Shown here: one piece after another, positions 30,329 to 39,722 of the stretch | Layout: the number at the start of each line of letters is the position of its first letter | Numbering within the stretch: position 1 is the first letter of the stretch | Source: Epithemia pelagica | Lineage: Eukaryota; Protista; Bacillariophyta | Direction: 5' to 3' | DNA: 64,000 nt | NCBI GenBank assembly: GCA_946965045.2 | Contig: OX337235.1 | Span: 3,410,001 to 3,474,000, forward strand | Notes under the pieces: generated by a model | Databases searched by the model: none | What the model was told of the DNA's origin: nothing | What the model saw: the letters and a program-made list of their open reading frames with translations, nothing else | Program-made: the position numbers and the translations under genes

Positions 30329-33300
30329 TTACGGAGTCAAGGTTTGTTCGTACATGACCTCGCCCGTAATGTCAATCAATTGAATGCTCAAGTTGCCCGT
30401 GACTCGGTCGATGGAGGCATGACCAAAGGATTGCAGATCCGTTCTCACAGGGGGAATGTTGCCGGGGAGACTGACTGTTCCGGGTCCCATTGCTGTAGTT
30501 CCAAACAAAAGACAGGAGAAACGTGAGTGACCAAAATACCCCACATAGATCGAACCATTTCTTGCTCCACATACCATACACATATTCCGGTCCAAAACTC
30601 GAGTCAATGGCATTCGGGCCAAAGGCTCCGGCATTGATGGGTCCAATCACAAATTCATCCAATGGCTTGTAGGCGGTAAAGCCTTCCGCTGCCCGCGACG
30701 GATCCATATTCACATGGGCAGTAAAGTGGACATCGGATGAAAGTGACACGACATTCGAAATGTCGTTCGTATGAATGAAGCCCAAAAGTTCTCTAATTTC
30801 CAATTCTCGTCCCAAAATGGCCGGGTCTTCTTGACCAAACGTATCACGATCCCCCGGACCACCGGTTACAATTCCAATAGGATCGTGAGAACTAATAATC
30901 TTCCATGTCGCATCAGAGTTCAACAGTCCATTCTTGAGCCAATCCAATTGTTCACGGCCCATCATGGCAATGCCAGCTCGCTCACTGTTGCCAGGATTGG
31001 GGTCACGGTAGGAACGGTAGTCGGGGAAAAAGATTTCCAAATGCTTTCCAAATCGTTGGCTTCGGTAAATGAGACTGTCTTCGACGATTGGATTGATTTC
31101 ATAAAAGGCTTGCAAGGAGTTGTCAAACAAACTGTTGGCCGCAGTACCAGGTTCGTACAACGGTCCTCCCAAAACTTCGGTTGGCCACCAGTTGTTGGTC
31201 ACTTCATGGTCATCCCACTGAACAAAAACGGGCGTCTTGGCCAAGAAACTTTGCATCTTGTCATCACCAAAGTTGTACTTCCAATTGTCACGGAATTCGT
31301 CCAATGTTACAGCAATAAAGTCCTTGGAGGGATTGTTGATCCAGGTGCCACCCCCAACTTGCTTCGGAATATCCTTGGTGGGCGGAATGGCGTTGTCGGC
31401 ATAGATCATGTCACCCTGAAATAGAGCAAACTGGGGTTCCAGGGCTTCCATGGTGGCAAATACAACGTATCCTCCCTCAATGACTTCTCCGTCCGGTGTC
31501 GTAACAGAAAGGTACGGGTTGCGCCCCCATCCCTGTCCCGCAAGGTCCGCGGCCCAGACAAAGTTCACGGCAGATTCTTCGTGAGCTCCTGCCAAGGTCT
31601 TAAATGATGCATCCATACTGGAGACAGCCGCCAAGTTTGGATTCAGCGGTGTGCACATGACCGTATAGTTGTACATGGTATAACTCATAAGATCTTGAAC
31701 TTCAAAGGTAACCGTGTAATCATCGGCTGAGAAGACTTGTTTCTCCATGATTTTGACGTTATCCAGATAAAGCTCCGCCAATGAATCCACTTCCATGTTG
31801 CAACGGGCCATGATATTAATGGAGGTTTCCGAAACTTCACCAGACTGAACGAAAACGTCGCTTGTGGTAATAGGAAGAGGATCCGGTACAGGTACGGGCA
31901 AAGTCTTGGTGTACATGACTGATCCGGTAATATCAATCAGCTTGATATCCAGCTCTCCTGTTTCGCTAACAGCTGCATAACCAAAAGATTGAAGATCACT
32001 CTTTGTCGGTGGGATGTTTCCTTCCAACCCCACAGAACCAGGACCCATGGCTTGAAAAAAAAAGAAAAATAACAAGTTGAGAACCTTCATTCAACAAGAA
32101 AGATAAAGCAGCATCACAAAACCGACTTACCATACACATATTCAGGTCCAAAACTTGTGTCAATCGCGTTCGGTCCAAAGGCACCAGAATTGATGGGTCC
32201 AATCACAAACTCATCAAGCGGAACAAAGTCCACAAAACCACCTGCTGCCCTCGATGGATCAATATTGACATGCGCTGTAAAATGAACATCAGAACTCAAG
32301 GATACGACCCCAAGAATGCCATTGTCATAAATAAAGGACAAAAGTTCTTTCACTTCCAATTCACGTCCCAGAATGGCCGGATCTTCTTGACCAAACGAAT
32401 CGCGATCACCAGCACCTCCCGTTACAATACCAATGGGATCATGCGAACTAATAATCTTCCATGTAGCATCAGAGGTTTTCAAGCCATCCTTGAGCCAATC
32501 CAATTGTTCACGGCCCATCATGGCAATACCTTCGGCCTTGCTATTGCCTGGATTGGGGTCACGGTAGGAACGATAATCGGGAAAAAAAATTTCCAAATGC
32601 TTTCCAAATCGTTGGCTTCGGTAAATGAGGCTATTTTCCATAATAGGATTGAATTCATAGAAGGCTTGGAGGGAATTGGCGAACAGGCTGTTGGCCGCAG
32701 TACCGGGTTCGTACAACGGCTCTCCCAAAACTTCGGTGGGCCACCAGTTGTTGGTCACTTCGTGATCATCCCACTGAACAACGACGAGCGTCTTGGCCAA
32801 GAAACTTTGCATCTTGTCATCACTAAAGTTGTACTTCCAATTGTCACGGAATTCATCCAACGTCTCGGCAATAAAGTCCTTGGGAGGATTGTTCGTCCAC
32901 GTACCGCCTCCAATGGAGGTAGGAATTGCCTTGGTGGGCGGAATGGCGTTGTCGGCATAAATCATGTCACCCTGAAAGAGGGTAAAGTCGGGCGCCAAAC
33001 CTTCCATGACTTCAAACACGACATATCCTCCTTCCACCTCCTCACCGCTTGGCGTCATGACGGAAAAGTCGGGATTGCGGCCCCATCCTTGACCGGCCAG
33101 GTCGGCCACCCATACAAAGCTCACAGCGGCTTCGTCGTGAGTTCCCACCAGTGTCGTAAAGGAAGCGTCCATACTCGCTACGGAGGTGGGTATCATGGGG
33201 TTGAGCGACATGCACGTCACCTTGTAGGTGTACATGGTGTCACTCATGAGGTCTTCGACGTGAAAGGTCACGGTATAGTCGTCGGCCGAGTACACTTGTT

Positions 33301-35141
33301 GTTCCATGATCAATGTACCGTCCACGAATAGGCATGCCAAGGAATCCACTTCCGAGTTGCAACGGGCCATGATATTAATGGAGGAATCGGAGACTTCCCC
33401 GGACTGTACAAAGACATCAATGGTGGGAATGGGAAGATACTCTGGAAGAGTAGGCTCCAAAGTCTTGGTGTACATGACATTACCGGCAATGTCAATCAGC
33501 TTGATATCGAGAACACCGTCCTCGGAAACAGCGGCATGACCAAAGGATTGCAGATCTGTTCTCACAGGCGGAATGTTGCCGGGGAGACTGACTGTTCCGG
33601 GTCCCATTGCTGAAGTTCCAAACAAAAGACGGGAGAAACGTGAGTGACCAACATCCACCATATAGATCGGACCATTTCTTGCTCCACATACCATACACAT
33701 ATTCCGGTCCAAAACTCGAGTCAAGAGCATTCGGGCCAAAGGCTCTGGCATTGATGGGTCCAATCACAAACTCATCCAATGGCTTGTAGTCGGTAAAGTT
33801 TCCCTCGGCTCGCGACGGATCCATGTTGACATGGGCAGTTAAATGGACATCAGAGCTCAAGGAGACCACATTCAAAATGTCCTCGTCGTGGATAAAGGCC
33901 AAGAGTTCTTGAATTTCGAGTTCTCTTCCCAAAATGGCCGGATCTTCTTGACCGAAAGAGTCGCGATCGCCTGGGCCACCCTTGACAATACCAATCGGAT
34001 CATGAGAACTGATAATCTTCCATGTAGCATCCGAATTCTTCAAGCCATCTTTGAGCCATTCAAGCTGTTCACGGCCCATCATAGCAATGCCTTCCGGATC
34101 ACTGTTGCCTGGATTGGGATCACGGTAGGAACGGTAGTCGGGAAAGAAAATTTCCAAGTGCTTTCCAAATCGTTGGCTTCGGTAAATGAGACTGTTTTCG
34201 AGAAGTGGGTTAAAGTCATAAAAGGCTTGGAGGGAGTTGGTAAACAGACTATTCGCGGCAGTTCCTGGGACATACAACGGTCCTTCGAGGACCTCACCGG
34301 GCCACCAATTGTTGGTTACTTCGTGATCATCCCATTGGACAAAGACGGGCGTCTTGGTAAGGAAGCTCTGCATCTTGTCATCACCAAAGTTGTACTTCCA
34401 ATTGTCACGGAATTCGTCCAATGTAACGGCAATAAAGTCCTTGGAGGGATTGTTGACTCAGGTTCCTCCTCCCACGTCGGTAGGAATATCCTTGGTTGCC
34501 GGAATGGCATTGTCGGCATAGATCATGTCGCCTTGAAAGAGGGCAAAGTCGGGTTCCAAATCTTCCATGACTTTAAAAACGACGTAACCACCTTGAATGA
34601 CGTCGCCACCGGGTGTAGTGACAGACAGGTCGGGGTTGCGACCCCATCCCTGTCCAGCCAAGTCGGCAGCCCAGACAAAGCTCACGGCTTTGGCGTCTTG
34701 AGGTGCAGGTGCCGTCTGAAAGGAAGCTTCGACACTGCTGTCCATGGGCATGGAGGTATCGAGGGGAAGGCAAAAGACGGTATACCGGTACAGTGTGTGA
34801 GGTTCCAAATCATCCACAACAAAGGTAAAGGTATAATCGTCGGCGGCAAAGACTTGCTTCACCCTCAAGATTCGGCCATTCACTCAGAGAGTCGCCGTCG
34901 CATCCACTTCGGCGTTGCAACGCGCCATGATATGAACGGACGAATCGGTGACTTCCCCCGATTGGACAAAGACTCGACTGGTCGTAGTGGGAAGTTCCTC
35001 CACCACATGACAATGATCGCGAGTGGGAGAGGACACTCGCGCCTGCACTTCGTGAGGAGCCAAGAGAAAGAGAATGGACGACCCAACGGCCCAGAGCGTT
35101 GTCCAAAGGTTACCTGGTGAACGGACCGGAAGCATGGTCAT
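30329..35141 (-). pseudogene. phoD: Triple-domain PhoD alkaline phosphatase gene (~1523 codons) with two in-frame TGA in module 1
   Basis: Signal peptide followed by three PhoD modules (GDMIYAD, QWDDHEV, PDYRSYRD, SSDVH) fused in one frame. Introns 33691-33610, 32130-32051 and 30574-30493 sit at homologous sites (EYVY|AMGP). TGA at 34884-34886 and 34458-34460. Confidence 0.8.
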
Positions 35142-36241: not shown

Positions 36242-36403
36242 GGAATCTTTGGCTGGCATGCGATGCACGCACGCCAGGCCGGAATTTATGCGAACGAAAC
36301 GCGAGAAAAGGGTACTTCGAGTCGCTGTTACTGTGGACAATACACCCACGGATCACGAATACTACACCGTCTATGGGTAACTCCTTTGGCTGGAGGGATT
36401 TGG
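36242..36403 (+). repeat. Direct repeat copy A (partner 38092-38239)
   Basis: Shared blocks in the same order and orientation in both copies: GGAATCTTTGGCTG, ATGCGATGCACGCACGCC, GTCGCTGTTACTGTGGA, CCGTCTATGGGTAA, CCTTTGGCTGGAGGGATTTGG. Confidence 0.85.
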
Positions 36404-36727
36404 CAGGACTTGAAAGGTGTAAAACTACTTTTTGAATTCAATGCACATCATCTCCCGACATGGGTTTAGGCAGACACACATGGTTCATCCAACAGCTGAA
36501 TCAGGGTGCGCACGAACGCCAGATCTCGACGGGTGACTTAGGACCTTCAAGGAAGGTCTGTACCAAATCCGGTGGACATGGCACCCCGTGGCGTGCCGTC
36601 ACATTGGAGGTCGTCCCTCCCCACTGTCAACCGCCACAACATTTCAAGGGGAGGTCCATGAAGACTTCTTGGGAACGGATTACCGATGAAGCCTTCAAAT
36701 CTTGGCTTCTACAGGCCATGACGATTG

Positions 36728-37216
36728 ATGAGTACAAATGACAACGTTTTGTGTCCTCCCAGACATCGTCGCCAACTGTTGGGGTTCGAGGAGTTGAAGA
36801 AGCGGACCGGTGGCATGGTACTGTGTGAATTCATGTTGATTATGCAGGCATCGGCCATTATCTTGACGATGTGCGGCGTCGTCAAGGAGTTGTTGAATAT
36901 CGGCATTGGCATGGCCTTTGACGAACTCATAGCTCGGAGGACGATGATCTGGTTCAGGCCAATAATTGTCCGCTTGGCACAATTCGCCAATGAATCCGAC
37001 AATGCCCCCTTTTATGCTTCAAAATCTACATGCTACCATTCCGCGGCGCCGTCGATCTGCCTTTTCAAACTCGCCCAATTGTACCAGCAATTGAACTGGT
37101 TCTTGTCCGACCCAGTCATTAACGAACTGTACGGAGAACAAATCGTGCGCGACGAGAATGGCAACGTCGCGCATCATCAACACCCGCATCAGCTTGAGCA
37201 ACCAGGCCAATGGTAA
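36728..37216 (+). CDS. Hypothetical protein, possibly the 3' part of a frameshifted gene starting ~36460
   Basis: 162-aa ORF with coding-like C/G third positions, overlapped upstream by a short ORF in another frame. No family recognised. Confidence 0.35.
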   Translation: MSTNDNVLCPPRHRRQLLGFEELKKRTGGMVLCEFMLIMQASAIILTMCGVVKELLNIGIGMAFDELIARRTMIWFRPIIVRLAQFANESDNAPFYASKSTCYHSAAPSICLFKLAQLYQQLNWFLSDPVINELYGEQIVRDENGNVAHHQHPHQLEQPGQW

Positions 37217-37350
37217 CTACAATGACATGGGGGTGAGGTTATTACATTCACTCTACTGTAGTTTTGAGGGCAAGTCAGTCCTACTATAAAATTATCCGCA
37301 TACCGGACTTACCTCATACGCATAATGCATCTGAGAGCATCTTTGCAGTA

Positions 37351-37650
37351 TCAAACGGGCCATGGCTTTCCCTGGGCCATGGCACGCTTGAATAGGTCCG
37401 ACACTTCCTGAGGATACTGCTCATAGAGTTGGTTTGTCTCGCGCAAGAGTTCCCATCCTTCCTTTGCGTGTGGGAGGAGTTTCTTGTTTACAGCGGTATC
37501 GGGAAAGGTCTCCTCATGAACGTGGAGTCCAGCGCGGCTAAAACACTCGCAGCACTCGGCCTCGGTGAGATAATGAATTTTCTGCAGATCGGCATACCAG
37601 CGCTTGCTTTTCTCCATAAAGTCAAGAACCAGTTGGTGCTTGTCCGTCAT
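37351..37650 (-). CDS. Small hypothetical protein (99 aa), downstream partner of the VapD-like ORF
   Basis: ATG 37650 (MTDKHQLVLDFMEKSKRWY...) to TGA 37351, helical-looking. The longer 183-aa track ORF begins at TTG, and its Ser-rich 5' part is the shadow frame of the VapD-like ORF. Confidence 0.55.
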   Translation of the reverse strand: MTDKHQLVLDFMEKSKRWYADLQKIHYLTEAECCECFSRAGLHVHEETFPDTAVNKKLLPHAKEGWELLRETNQLYEQYPQEVSDLFKRAMAQGKPWPV

Positions 37651-37702
37651 GATGAACTGCGTGTTGTCTTCCGTGTAAAGAGGAGTGCACGTGTCGCATT
37701 CC

Positions 37703-37984
37703 TCACCGGATGGGGACGAAATTGAAACGCTGTTCGTAGTGGAGATGCCGGAATATCCCGACTCCAAACCTTGCTTCAACTGTGGATGCAAAGAGTTGGA
37801 CGGCGAGGTGGAAGACGAAAGGTCCGGCAGCGACATTGTCTGCGCGACAGCAAGATTGCTGGTACCGTGTGAGTCCTTGCTGGTGGAGATTTCGTGCGAC
37901 AAAGTTGTACGCTGTTGACCTTGGAATTCCTTTTGCGTCGATGTAGTTCAGGTTGAGGTCGTACTGGAGGACGAAGTTGGCCAT
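37703..37984 (-). CDS. vapD: VapD/Cas2-like ribonuclease, 93 aa
   Basis: FVLQYDL..G.P..TAY..VARNL..QGL...QQS aligns by eye to H. pylori VapD HP0315 YALAFDL..GEP..KAY..LRQEL..LGF...QGS, and the length is nearly identical. ATG start and strongly C-ending codons. Confidence 0.7.
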   Translation of the reverse strand: MANFVLQYDLNLNYIDAKGIPRSTAYNFVARNLHQQGLTRYQQSCCRADNVAAGPFVFHLAVQLFASTVEARFGVGIFRHLHYEQRFNFVPIR

Positions 37985-38091
37985 TCCATTGATGACAGAA
38001 GCCCTGAAGACGGTGTTGGGAAGGGGTTGTAGTTGTATCTACTCCTAACAACAACAGTTAATCCAACACCCGAAGCGTTTGTTTTCGCTGT

Positions 38092-38239
38092 GGAATCTTT
38101 GGCTGCAATGCGATGCACGCACGCCTCGCCGGAAGACTTTGCGAACGAAGGGTACGTCTAGTCGCTGTTACTGTGGATGCAAATGGACAGACGGATACTA
38201 CGCCGTCTATGGGTAAATCCTTTGGCTGGAGGGATTTGG
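38092..38239 (+). repeat. Direct repeat copy B (partner 36242-36403)
   Basis: Shares the same ordered sequence blocks as copy A, and lies ~110 bp upstream of the VapD-like start codon. Confidence 0.85.
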
Positions 38240-38567: not shown

Positions 38568-39722
38568 TTACGGAGAATCCAGAACAAATACATTGGGTCG
38601 AATGGTTACACCATTGGTTTCCGTAATGATGTTGGTATTGGCAGCAATCATGTTGGCAAAGGTCCACGGGTTCAAATCAATGACACCGGCCGTAATCTTG
38701 GCCAAGTCCGTTTGACTTTGCTCGGCCATGTAAAAATACTCATCGCCATCGCGCAGGCGCACAAATTGTTCCTTCAAGAGTTCGGCCAGGAGTTCTCCCA
38801 CATGCGCTCCTTCCATGTGATCTTCAGCCAAACATCCGACCCACAAATCCATTTGGTCGGGTCCTCCGCAATAGACACTTTCCAAGGCGACTTGCAAGTC
38901 GGGATTGGTTGTCACTTCCGCAAACGACATCTTGGGCGCCAAACCCAAACCTGCCCGCATTTCGTTGTACCGGCAAAGTCCATGATCGCGTCCACGGTGA
39001 ATATTGAGAGCCACCAAGTCAATTCCCTTCGGTCCTCCTTCGGTAGTATTGGCAAACAAGAATTCTCGGACGTCTGGAACGACCTTGGTGTCAATCAATT
39101 CGGCCGGATGCTCGACCAATCCCCACAAAATGTCATCAACCAAGGCCGGGTCATCGTGGAGGAGTTGGGGTCGGAAAAAAAGGTCCCTCAGTGACATGAA
39201 AGTTGGTTCGGGAGGTGTCGTGGTGGTATCGAACCGCCCATAGACGAGTAAATCACCCGACAACATGGTATGACCAAACCGAAAGGCCGCCGTGGCAAAT
39301 TCCACGGACATAAACGGATCCACGTTCTTTTCTTTATCATAGCCGTTATAGCCGCCTTCAGGTGTGACACCTGGGGCTTGTGATCCCATGAGGGTGGGCA
39401 AAAATTCTTCGTACGTGATTTTTTGTATTTGGGCCGAGACAATTTTACGAGCCATGTCATACAAGGCATCATCCCATGCCGCCGTATCCAACTCAGAGGC
39501 ATCTGTGACATGATGCTCCTTGACCATTTGCTGGGCCAGCAACTGGGCCAAACGATTGTGTTCTCGCACAAACAATGTGTGCATGGAAGTTAATCCCAAT
39601 TGTTCATTGACACGTGGATCACCGGCCTTAAACATGAACGACCCGGGAGCCACTACGGGCAACAAGTCTAGATGGCCGTCTTGTGGCGACACAGAAAGTT
39701 TTCCTCGGGAAAAACTGGGTCT
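38568..39722 (-). pseudogene. Animal-type heme peroxidase (peroxidase-cyclooxygenase family), C-terminal portion only
   Basis: SFSRGKL, FKAGDPRVNE, HTLFVREHNRLA, AAFRFGH (proximal His), DLVALNIHRGRDHG and DLWVGCLAE are present. There is an in-frame TAG at 39723-39725 and no recognisable N-terminal distal-His region upstream. Confidence 0.75.

Follow-up and report, generated by a model that had tools for sequence, protein, structure and literature searches.

The locus and its surroundings

The window, i.e. the whole stretch of 64,000 nucleotides analyzed here, corresponds to positions 3,410,001–3,474,000 of contig C8 in an assembly of 23 contigs and 60.5 Mb. It harbors a compact cassette of ~0.65 kb, represented by multiple copies in this genome, that encodes two proteins from overlapping reading frames (Table 1). 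The first of these frames, denoted ORF-A, is the 93-amino acid ORF reported in an earlier note on this DNA; it is present as reported, and the N-terminal residues of its translation agree with the sequence quoted there. The earlier note treated ORF-A as a solitary gene, but ORF-A has a conserved companion frame, ORF-B, that overlaps it in the +1 phase.

Table 1. Features of the cassette and its immediate flanks (positions in the window)
Feature	Position	Strand	Remarks
Left direct repeat, ~150 bp	36242..36403		Three collinear blocks with 86–94% identity to the right copy
ORF-B	37351..37947	minus	+1 frame relative to ORF-A; 198 open codons
ORF-B C-terminal domain	37351..37650	minus	99 amino acids, four helices; begins MTDKHQ; motifs TEAECCECFSRAG and PHAKEGW
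ORF-A	37703..37984	minus	ATG start, TGA stop; 93-amino acid VapD-like protein
Metatranscriptome contig	37838..38018		181 nt, marine, run X1; 2 differences
Ser44 codon of ORF-A (TCT)	37853..37855	minus	Counterpart of Ser43 in HP0315 and of Ser46 in the C. jejuni VapD; kept in 26/31 family members
Upstream ORF	37948..37989	minus	13 codons, in the ORF-B frame; ATG 5 nt before the ORF-A ATG; TGA at 37948–37950
Asp9 codon of ORF-A (GAC)	37958..37960	minus	Counterpart of the catalytic Asp7 in the VapD proteins of H. pylori and H. influenzae; retained in 27/29 sequences of the family
Right direct repeat	38092..38239		Between the ORF-A start and the haem peroxidase gene

The neighbors of the cassette are two genes for PhoD-like phosphatases and a gene for an animal-type haem peroxidase; Rfam families and tRNAs were not found close to the locus. 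The PhoD-like genes form a tandem pair on the minus strand (30372–33763), and the best named relatives of the neighboring PhoD-like gene, at 65–67% identity, come from Thalassiosira oceanica, Amphora coffeaeformis and Nitzschia inconspicua. The haem peroxidase ORF (38568–39692) spans only positions 207–524 of the profile, so that the N-terminal part of this protein must be encoded in an upstream exon. The origin of the DNA from a diatom nuclear genome, as proposed in the earlier note, is supported by the 60.5-Mb assembly to which the contig belongs, by the diatom-like PhoD neighbor and by contigs from an independent sequencing run that span the cassette and its junction with the haem peroxidase gene. 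The same contigs, in conjunction with the diatom affinity of the PhoD neighbor, make contamination and misassembly very unlikely.

ORF-A is a genuine gene under purifying selection

A word-indexed search yielded two full-length homologs of ORF-A, of 93 and 91 amino acids, in which all indels are multiples of three and the terminal residue is the same. A profile search with HMMER against 1.84 billion representative proteins yielded 40 clusters, mostly of 91–94 amino acids, and nothing outside ORF-A's own family; the homologs of 91–94 amino acids share the end residue. The family is colinear along the entire ORF, and on this ground the description of ORF-A as intronless holds. The consensus of the 31-sequence family alignment reads MP-F-LQYDL ... 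VY ... L..RGW.R.Q.S.W ... A..hE.RFG.G.F ... VR. The motifs for which ORF-A had originally been singled out (Y8-D9-L10, G19-x-P21, A25-Y26, L33-x3-G37 and Q42-x-S44) are all present, and their conservation in the family goes beyond chance: Y8 is retained in 28 of 29 sequences, D9 in 27/29, Y26 in 30/31, L33 in 29/31, G37 in 28/31, Q42 in 27/30 and S44 in 26/31.

The mode of substitution points in the same direction. In all 28 pairwise codon alignments, the number of substitutions declines from the third to the first to the second position of the ORF-A codons (44, 25 and 15, respectively, in the closest pair), and in all 28 pairs, the identity in the ORF-A frame exceeds that in the overlapping ORF-B frame, e.g. 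0.67 vs 0.47. Furthermore, a solitary subfamily of ORF-A (P0068; 93 amino acids, 31% identity, GC content of ~54%), found in 95 blocks of the metagenome collection (L019:3001-3282, L020:1007-1288), lacks ORF-B and retains ORF-A with both other frames filled with stops. ORF-A, then, is a real gene of the diatom nuclear genome that evolves under purifying selection, and the family to which it belongs is multi-copy and unannotated, its members bearing at most the name ‘hypothetical protein' in any source and none in UniRef.

The opposite possibility is that ORF-A is a chance, out-of-frame ORF lying over a real ORF-B gene, or else a product of bacterial contamination or misassembly. ORF-A itself has no Pfam or NCBIfam match, and gene callers prefer the longer ORF of the other frame, both of which are compatible with such an artifact. 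However, the codon-position pattern and the higher conservation favor the ORF-A frame, the solitary subfamily keeps ORF-A open with the other frames closed, the structural model with a VapD fold is a confident one (see below), and the cassette lies on a multi-Mb contig among diatom genes, with agreeing contigs from another run and paralogs on 9 contigs. Taken with this evidence, the probability of an artifact is close to nil.

ORF-A as a distant relative of VapD and Cas2

The earlier note described ORF-A as a VapD/Cas2-type ribonuclease. At the sequence level, the signals are consistent but weak. Direct scans with the window protein produced no Pfam or NCBIfam match at E≤10. Among the 31 family members, eight showed sub-threshold matches to the NCBIfam VapD profile NF041506 (best E 0.003), five to Cas2 and one to PF09827 (E 0.08), every profile family other than VapD and Cas2 being matched by just one of the 31; one family member also matched the Cas2 models of PADLOC (E 8e-4). 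The curated cut-offs of NF041506, PF09827 and TIGR01573 are missed by the window protein and by all the other family members alike. When the family profile was compared with the PDB, the H. pylori VapD HP0315 (3UI3) was recovered at E 0.12, with D9 and S44 of ORF-A aligned to D7 and S43. In a six-frame search of the whole 60.5-Mb genome, the VapD HMM gave a single match at E≤10 (E 0.32; 17 bits, with a cut-off of 100), which is the paralog of ORF-A located on contig 2, and the analogous scan with PF09827 did not find the window locus.

The structural similarity is clearer. The AF2 model built on the family alignment (pLDDT 88.5) has the topology beta1-alpha-alpha1-beta2-beta3-alpha2-beta4. In a Foldseek comparison with the PDB, of the kind proposed in the earlier note, the model matched Cas2 and VapD entries with a probability of 1.0; the VapD structures (TMq 0.72–0.76) are the best full-length matches in that database. 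In the ESM Atlas, a cluster named ‘Endoribonuclease VapD' ranks first by shape (TM 0.80), and VapD also comes first by language-model features. VapD proteins are homodimers with RNase (or DNA-damaging) activity. This activity depends on a conserved Asp and a conserved Ser in the cleft of the dimer (PMC11980593), and the counterparts of both are kept in ORF-A (Table 1); against the likeness, Asp76 of HP0315 is replaced by Gly in ORF-A, in an alignment made by eye.

The weak but consistent sequence signals, the clearer structural similarity and the retention of the Asp and Ser residues, taken together, lead us to accept that ORF-A is VapD-like and belongs, as a distant member, to the VapD/Cas2 superfamily, although it misses the curated family thresholds. 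Of the original claim, the ferredoxin fold of the VapD/Cas2 type and the two residues are thus supported. By analogy with these relatives, ORF-A would be expected to possess nuclease activity and might be toxic.

The comparison with the studied VapD toxins (H. pylori HP0315, 3UI3; H. influenzae VapXD, 6ZN8; C. jejuni VapWD, 9KAN) reveals several shared features, namely, the size of ~90–95 amino acids, the Asp that ends beta1 in an hhhh-D-L motif, the Ser in Q-x-S after beta2, and a small adjoining partner gene. Unlike these toxins, with which it shares only 7–17% identity and whose profile cut-offs it misses, ORF-A is nuclear in a eukaryote and belongs to a family with ~12 loci in one genome. 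With Cas2 (PF09827, TIGR01573), ORF-A shares the superfamily fold and the N-terminal Asp motif, and members of its family produce the weak HMM matches mentioned above; unlike the Cas2 of CRISPR-Cas, it resides in a genome where the Cas1 profile found no match and the control profiles did. In literature searches, neither VapD or Cas2 homologs nor toxin-antitoxin pairs turned up for diatoms, and no VapD turned up for eukaryotes, in agreement with the earlier note, to which no described diatom VapD was known.

A second conserved protein in the +1 frame

ORF-B consists of two distinct parts. The stretch that overlaps ORF-A is rich in Ser and Thr and is probably disordered; the C-terminal part is a domain for which AF2 predicts four helices (pLDDT 88.6) and in which E32, G65 and W66 are invariant in a 14-sequence alignment. 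Some subfamilies carry a lysine-rich, NLS-like patch between the two. The in-frame ATG codons at 37836 and 37650 correspond to predicted products of 161 and 99 amino acids, and the homologs of ORF-B are proteins of 190–217 amino acids, one of them from the transcriptome of Entomoneis sp. CCMP467. The domain has no match in Pfam and NCBIfam (E≤10), PHROG or PADLOC; in searches of its fold against the PDB (Foldseek, and VIA with all representatives) and the ESM Atlas, nothing rose above the background for helical proteins, and its feature matches in the ESM Atlas are confined to unnamed clusters with few shared features. The known antitoxins of VapD are the SH3-like VapX and VapY and the VapD-like VapW (PMC11980593). 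Comparison of the domain with the partner chains of 6ZN8 and 9KAN produced no match either, and given that it resembles nothing known, the ORF-B domain is not a VapX, VapY or VapW antitoxin.

The pairing of the two frames extends to diverged copies. In each of the linked copies that were read, i.e. four intact paralogs and the metagenome contigs L002, L003, L012 and L018, ORF-A and ORF-B overlap or abut, and the ORF-A identity among these copies is 36–67%. In eight linked copies, the +1 frame contains 2 stops, both at the extreme 5' end, against 14–17 expected from the codon usage of the host or of ORF-B (P < 1/4000); in the solitary subfamily, which has no ORF-B, this frame contains 6 stops. 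The +2 frame is depleted of stops as well (18 vs 46–50 expected), so that the depletion specific to the +1 frame is modest or marginal, and the eight copies are also related to each other. A null expectation derived from the codon usage of ORF-A itself was discarded as circular.

The start of ORF-B differs among the copies. In the relatives, the ORF-B ATG is located at -23, -11 or -8 relative to the ATG of ORF-A, or else at +52 or +58, and the frame is uninterrupted; the ATG at +52 arises from the conserved Asn-Gly codons of ORF-A. The 13-codon upstream ORF in the window copy is a remnant of the ORF-B start that is used in the relatives, and on the mRNA of this copy, the ORF-A start is followed first by the ATG at 37836, which lies in the ORF-B frame. 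At 37989, a T>C variant on the plus strand, found in X1 and in part of X4, turns the upstream ORF-B-frame ATG into GTG; hence the upstream ORF is polymorphic.

The constant phase of the two frames might suggest that ORF-A and the ORF-B domain form one fusion protein, produced either by splicing or by a programmed +1 frameshift close to where ORF-A stops. Indeed, ORF-B is in the +1 frame in every copy, its domain begins 30–60 nt past the ORF-A stop, and the database proteins P0007, P0016 and P0020 join both parts. These three, however, read conserved parts out of frame and are thus faulty gene models; the slippery/stop context is not conserved (CGG TGA G, CGT TGA C, AGA TAA A, CCG TAA G); the candidate GT..AG introns that were checked by eye run into stops or leave the frames unjoined; and frameshifting does not need a +1 frame that is open along all of ORF-A. 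A fusion is, in our opinion, very improbable. As to two separate proteins, a complex prediction for ORF-A and the ORF-B domain scored 0.02, which we count neither way with regard to binding.

Multiple copies and asymmetric decay

Profile searches of the genome identified ~12 loci, distributed over 9 contigs. Four of these (C8, C18, C11:516k and C2) have an intact ORF-A, and the ORF-B domain is intact at all four. At three further loci, ORF-B is intact and ORF-A is dead, as a result of a stop and a 57-nt in-frame deletion (C11:836k), of a frameshift and a deletion (C6), or of a stop (C7); at C16:1.606M, ORF-B is present and ORF-A is unrecognizable. Altogether, ORF-A is dead in 7 of ~11 copies, and at no locus of this genome is an intact ORF-A accompanied by a lost ORF-B domain. 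Some of the intact copies have peculiarities of their own: the window copy carries an early stop in ORF-B, and ORF-A in the C18 copy (L006) has no in-frame ATG.

The asymmetry of decay, with ORF-B surviving without ORF-A at 3–4 loci, fits the prediction for a poison-antidote pair, in which the antidote outlives the poison; it equally fits ORF-B being the main host gene.

Two loci on C16 have further features. The ORF-B-like gene at C16:1605500-1607600 (L016) has the conserved C-terminal domain and a different, longer N-terminal region, with ORF-A undetected; it may be an ‘orphan' partner or an ancestral stand-alone form. The decayed copy at C16:2.432M adjoins an ORF that resembles the C-terminal end of a Copia-type retrotransposon polyprotein (L010:1-435).

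Flanking repeats and mobility

The two direct repeats that bracket the window cassette along with ~1 kb of other DNA are 79% identical overall and occur in only these two places in the genome. In run X4, one contig joins position 36415 to 38238 with one extra C, skipping 1822 bp that include the whole cassette; its depth of 175 is comparable to the 134 of the filled path. This junction could be a presence/absence allele, although its join is not a clean recombinant of the flanking repeats. The C18 copy (C18:1099629-1100351) is a minimal 661-bp cassette surrounded by perfect 31-bp direct repeats (L006:1448-1478, 2140-2170) that are likewise absent from the rest of the genome. Flanking repeats thus accompany the cassette at 2 of 10 loci, and the eight others are without them.

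Such repeats hint at insertion or duplication of the cassette as a unit. A transposon in the proper sense was considered and rejected: the paralogs share neither flanking DNA nor termini, and the repeats are unique to their loci and limited to 2 of the 10. The suggestion that the gene is element-borne, made in the earlier note, therefore fares unevenly: the locus-specific repeats around two copies and the possible empty allele are hints in its favor, and the paralogs share no DNA beyond the two ORFs.

Several repeats and contigs of a different kind were observed at these loci. A 150-bp stretch of the bracketed segment (36656–36805) has two 82%-identical copies on contig 3, and its depth in X4 is raised three- to four-fold, which probably marks it as a small dispersed repeat. 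A perfect 81-nt direct repeat, with the copies 1252 bp apart (L008:20-100 and L008:1272-1352), is located just upstream of the C11:516k cassette without enclosing it. Another X4 contig connects 37564 with 37937 and omits 372 bp that reach from the ORF-B domain to the N-terminus of ORF-A. The skipped segment has GT..GC ends on the plus strand and accordingly is not a canonical intron on either strand; the contig may derive from a paralog at the likeness setting of 80%.

The question of origin

The claim that the gene was acquired horizontally did not find support in the search for a donor. These searches found no close relatives in prokaryotes (pattern scan of one genome per bacterial or archaeal species), in IMG/VR (pattern scans) or in plasmids (tblastn), the PHROGs contained no match for the cassette proteins, and the HMMER search described above returned the family itself. 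Horizontal transfer is, therefore, not established, the only ground for it being that the superfamily is otherwise prokaryotic, and any transfer would have to be either old or routed through viruses.

The closest structure overall to the ORF-A model is A0A3G5AH94, an uncharacterized protein of 107 amino acids in BFVD (E 2e-6, TMq 0.85, rmsd 1.6 A, 22% identity), which is closer than any bacterial VapD. It comes from the giant-virus MAG of a Sylvanvirus sp. recovered from forest soil (described in PMC6243002), so that this best structural match is a likeness to the predicted structure of an unstudied metagenome-bin protein. One could accordingly surmise that the cassette stems from a virus that became endogenized, be it a giant virus or a small one with overlapping genes, and that the copies are viral insertions rather than a module of cellular or bacterial derivation. 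Besides the Sylvanvirus protein, such an origin would account for the overlapping frames, which are typical of viruses, and for the locus-specific direct repeats at two copies together with the possible empty allele. Against it, the scans of IMG/VR and PHROG were negative, no other virus-like genes were seen beside the copies examined, the paralogs have only the two ORFs in common, and the gene in the giant-virus MAG may itself have been acquired from a host or may belong to host DNA within the MAG. We regard direct viral derivation as improbable.

Expression

The marine metatranscriptome contig listed in Table 1 hints at transcription through the ORF-A start; contigs of this kind are strandless, and carry-over of DNA is possible. 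Two runs of uncertain type provide contigs that are 96–97% identical across the ORF-B domain, and homologs of ORF-B are predicted as complete ORFs in the poly(A) transcriptome of Entomoneis. Collectively, these observations, which at the window locus come down to one short metatranscriptome contig, are suggestive of expression of the ORF-A family in diatom nuclear genomes.

A possible toxin-antidote pair without an operon

The overlap of the two frames would allow a single mRNA to yield both proteins by means of alternative start codons and leaky scanning, and in the window copy, ORF-B could be reached by re-initiation after the 13-codon upstream ORF. ORF-A would be a nuclease and ORF-B its cognate partner or antidote, so that the pair would resemble a type II toxin-antitoxin module in which overprinting, rather than an operon, secures co-expression. 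We consider it probable, if only just, that the cassette encodes a VapD-like nuclease and its cognate partner, expressed from one mRNA by alternative initiation as a toxin-antitoxin-like pair; the nuclease activity and toxicity of ORF-A, the binding and neutralization by ORF-B and the mode of translation are the presumptive parts of this scheme. The more specific proposal, that this is a diatom nuclear toxin-antidote system derived from a prokaryotic VapD, in which overlapping frames replace the operon and the 0.65-kb cassette spreads and decays as a selfish unit, possibly shuttled by giant viruses, is less likely than not.

A different view of the same genes is that ORF-A is a domesticated, non-toxic nuclease or RNA-binding protein, involved, for example, in RNA turnover or antiviral defense, and that ORF-B is an unrelated, overprinted nuclear protein with no neutralizing role. 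Stand-alone VapD genes exist in bacteria (PMC11980593), metagenomes abound in the solitary ORF-A subfamily that lacks ORF-B, ORF-B occurs alone at several loci, and its fold is unlike that of any known VapD antitoxin. Yet, the linkage of the frames is kept at 36–45% identity of ORF-A and across organisms, this genome contains no intact ORF-A that has lost the ORF-B domain, and a multi-copy family with 7 of ~11 ORF-A copies dead would be unusual for a housekeeping gene. Domestication thus appears rather unlikely, and the paired, toxin-antitoxin-like function remains the reading that we prefer.

The pair differs in organization from the known VapD modules: the partner is all-helical and lies in the overlapping +1 frame, as opposed to the SH3-like VapX or VapY, encoded upstream, or the VapD-like VapW. 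Parallels in organization are offered by killer genes of eukaryotes, such as Spok in Podospora and wtf in fission yeast, which are likewise compact, multi-copy and fast-decaying, with a toxin and an antidote stemming from one locus; in the wtf genes, the two are made by alternative starts. The overprinted genes of viruses, in which overlapping frames couple two products, provide another parallel. None of these, however, shows kinship in sequence or fold to the cassette, and unlike them, the putative toxin ORF-A has a recognizable prokaryotic ancestry.

According to Koonin (2017, PMC5303251), eukaryotes are devoid of homologs of Cas proteins and of toxin-antitoxin modules owing to the loss of operons. 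A diatom toxin-antidote pair derived from VapD, if real, would be a direct exception to this view, the overlapping frames being a simple way to couple two products without an operon. VapD and Cas2 are regarded as prokaryotic, and the VapD-like family described here is diversified, under selection and probably expressed in the nuclear genomes of diatoms. Should the two proteins be a poison and its antidote, the cassette would represent a new class of selfish or defensive element in diatoms, which are ecologically dominant algae, and the choice between a bacterial and a giant-virus origin would become testable.

The ORF-A family is invisible in current annotation. The usual ORF cut-off in transcriptome pipelines is 100 amino acids; at 93 amino acids, ORF-A falls below it and, in addition, lies beneath a longer ORF. 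These circumstances suggest that annotation systematically misses small overprinted genes of protists.
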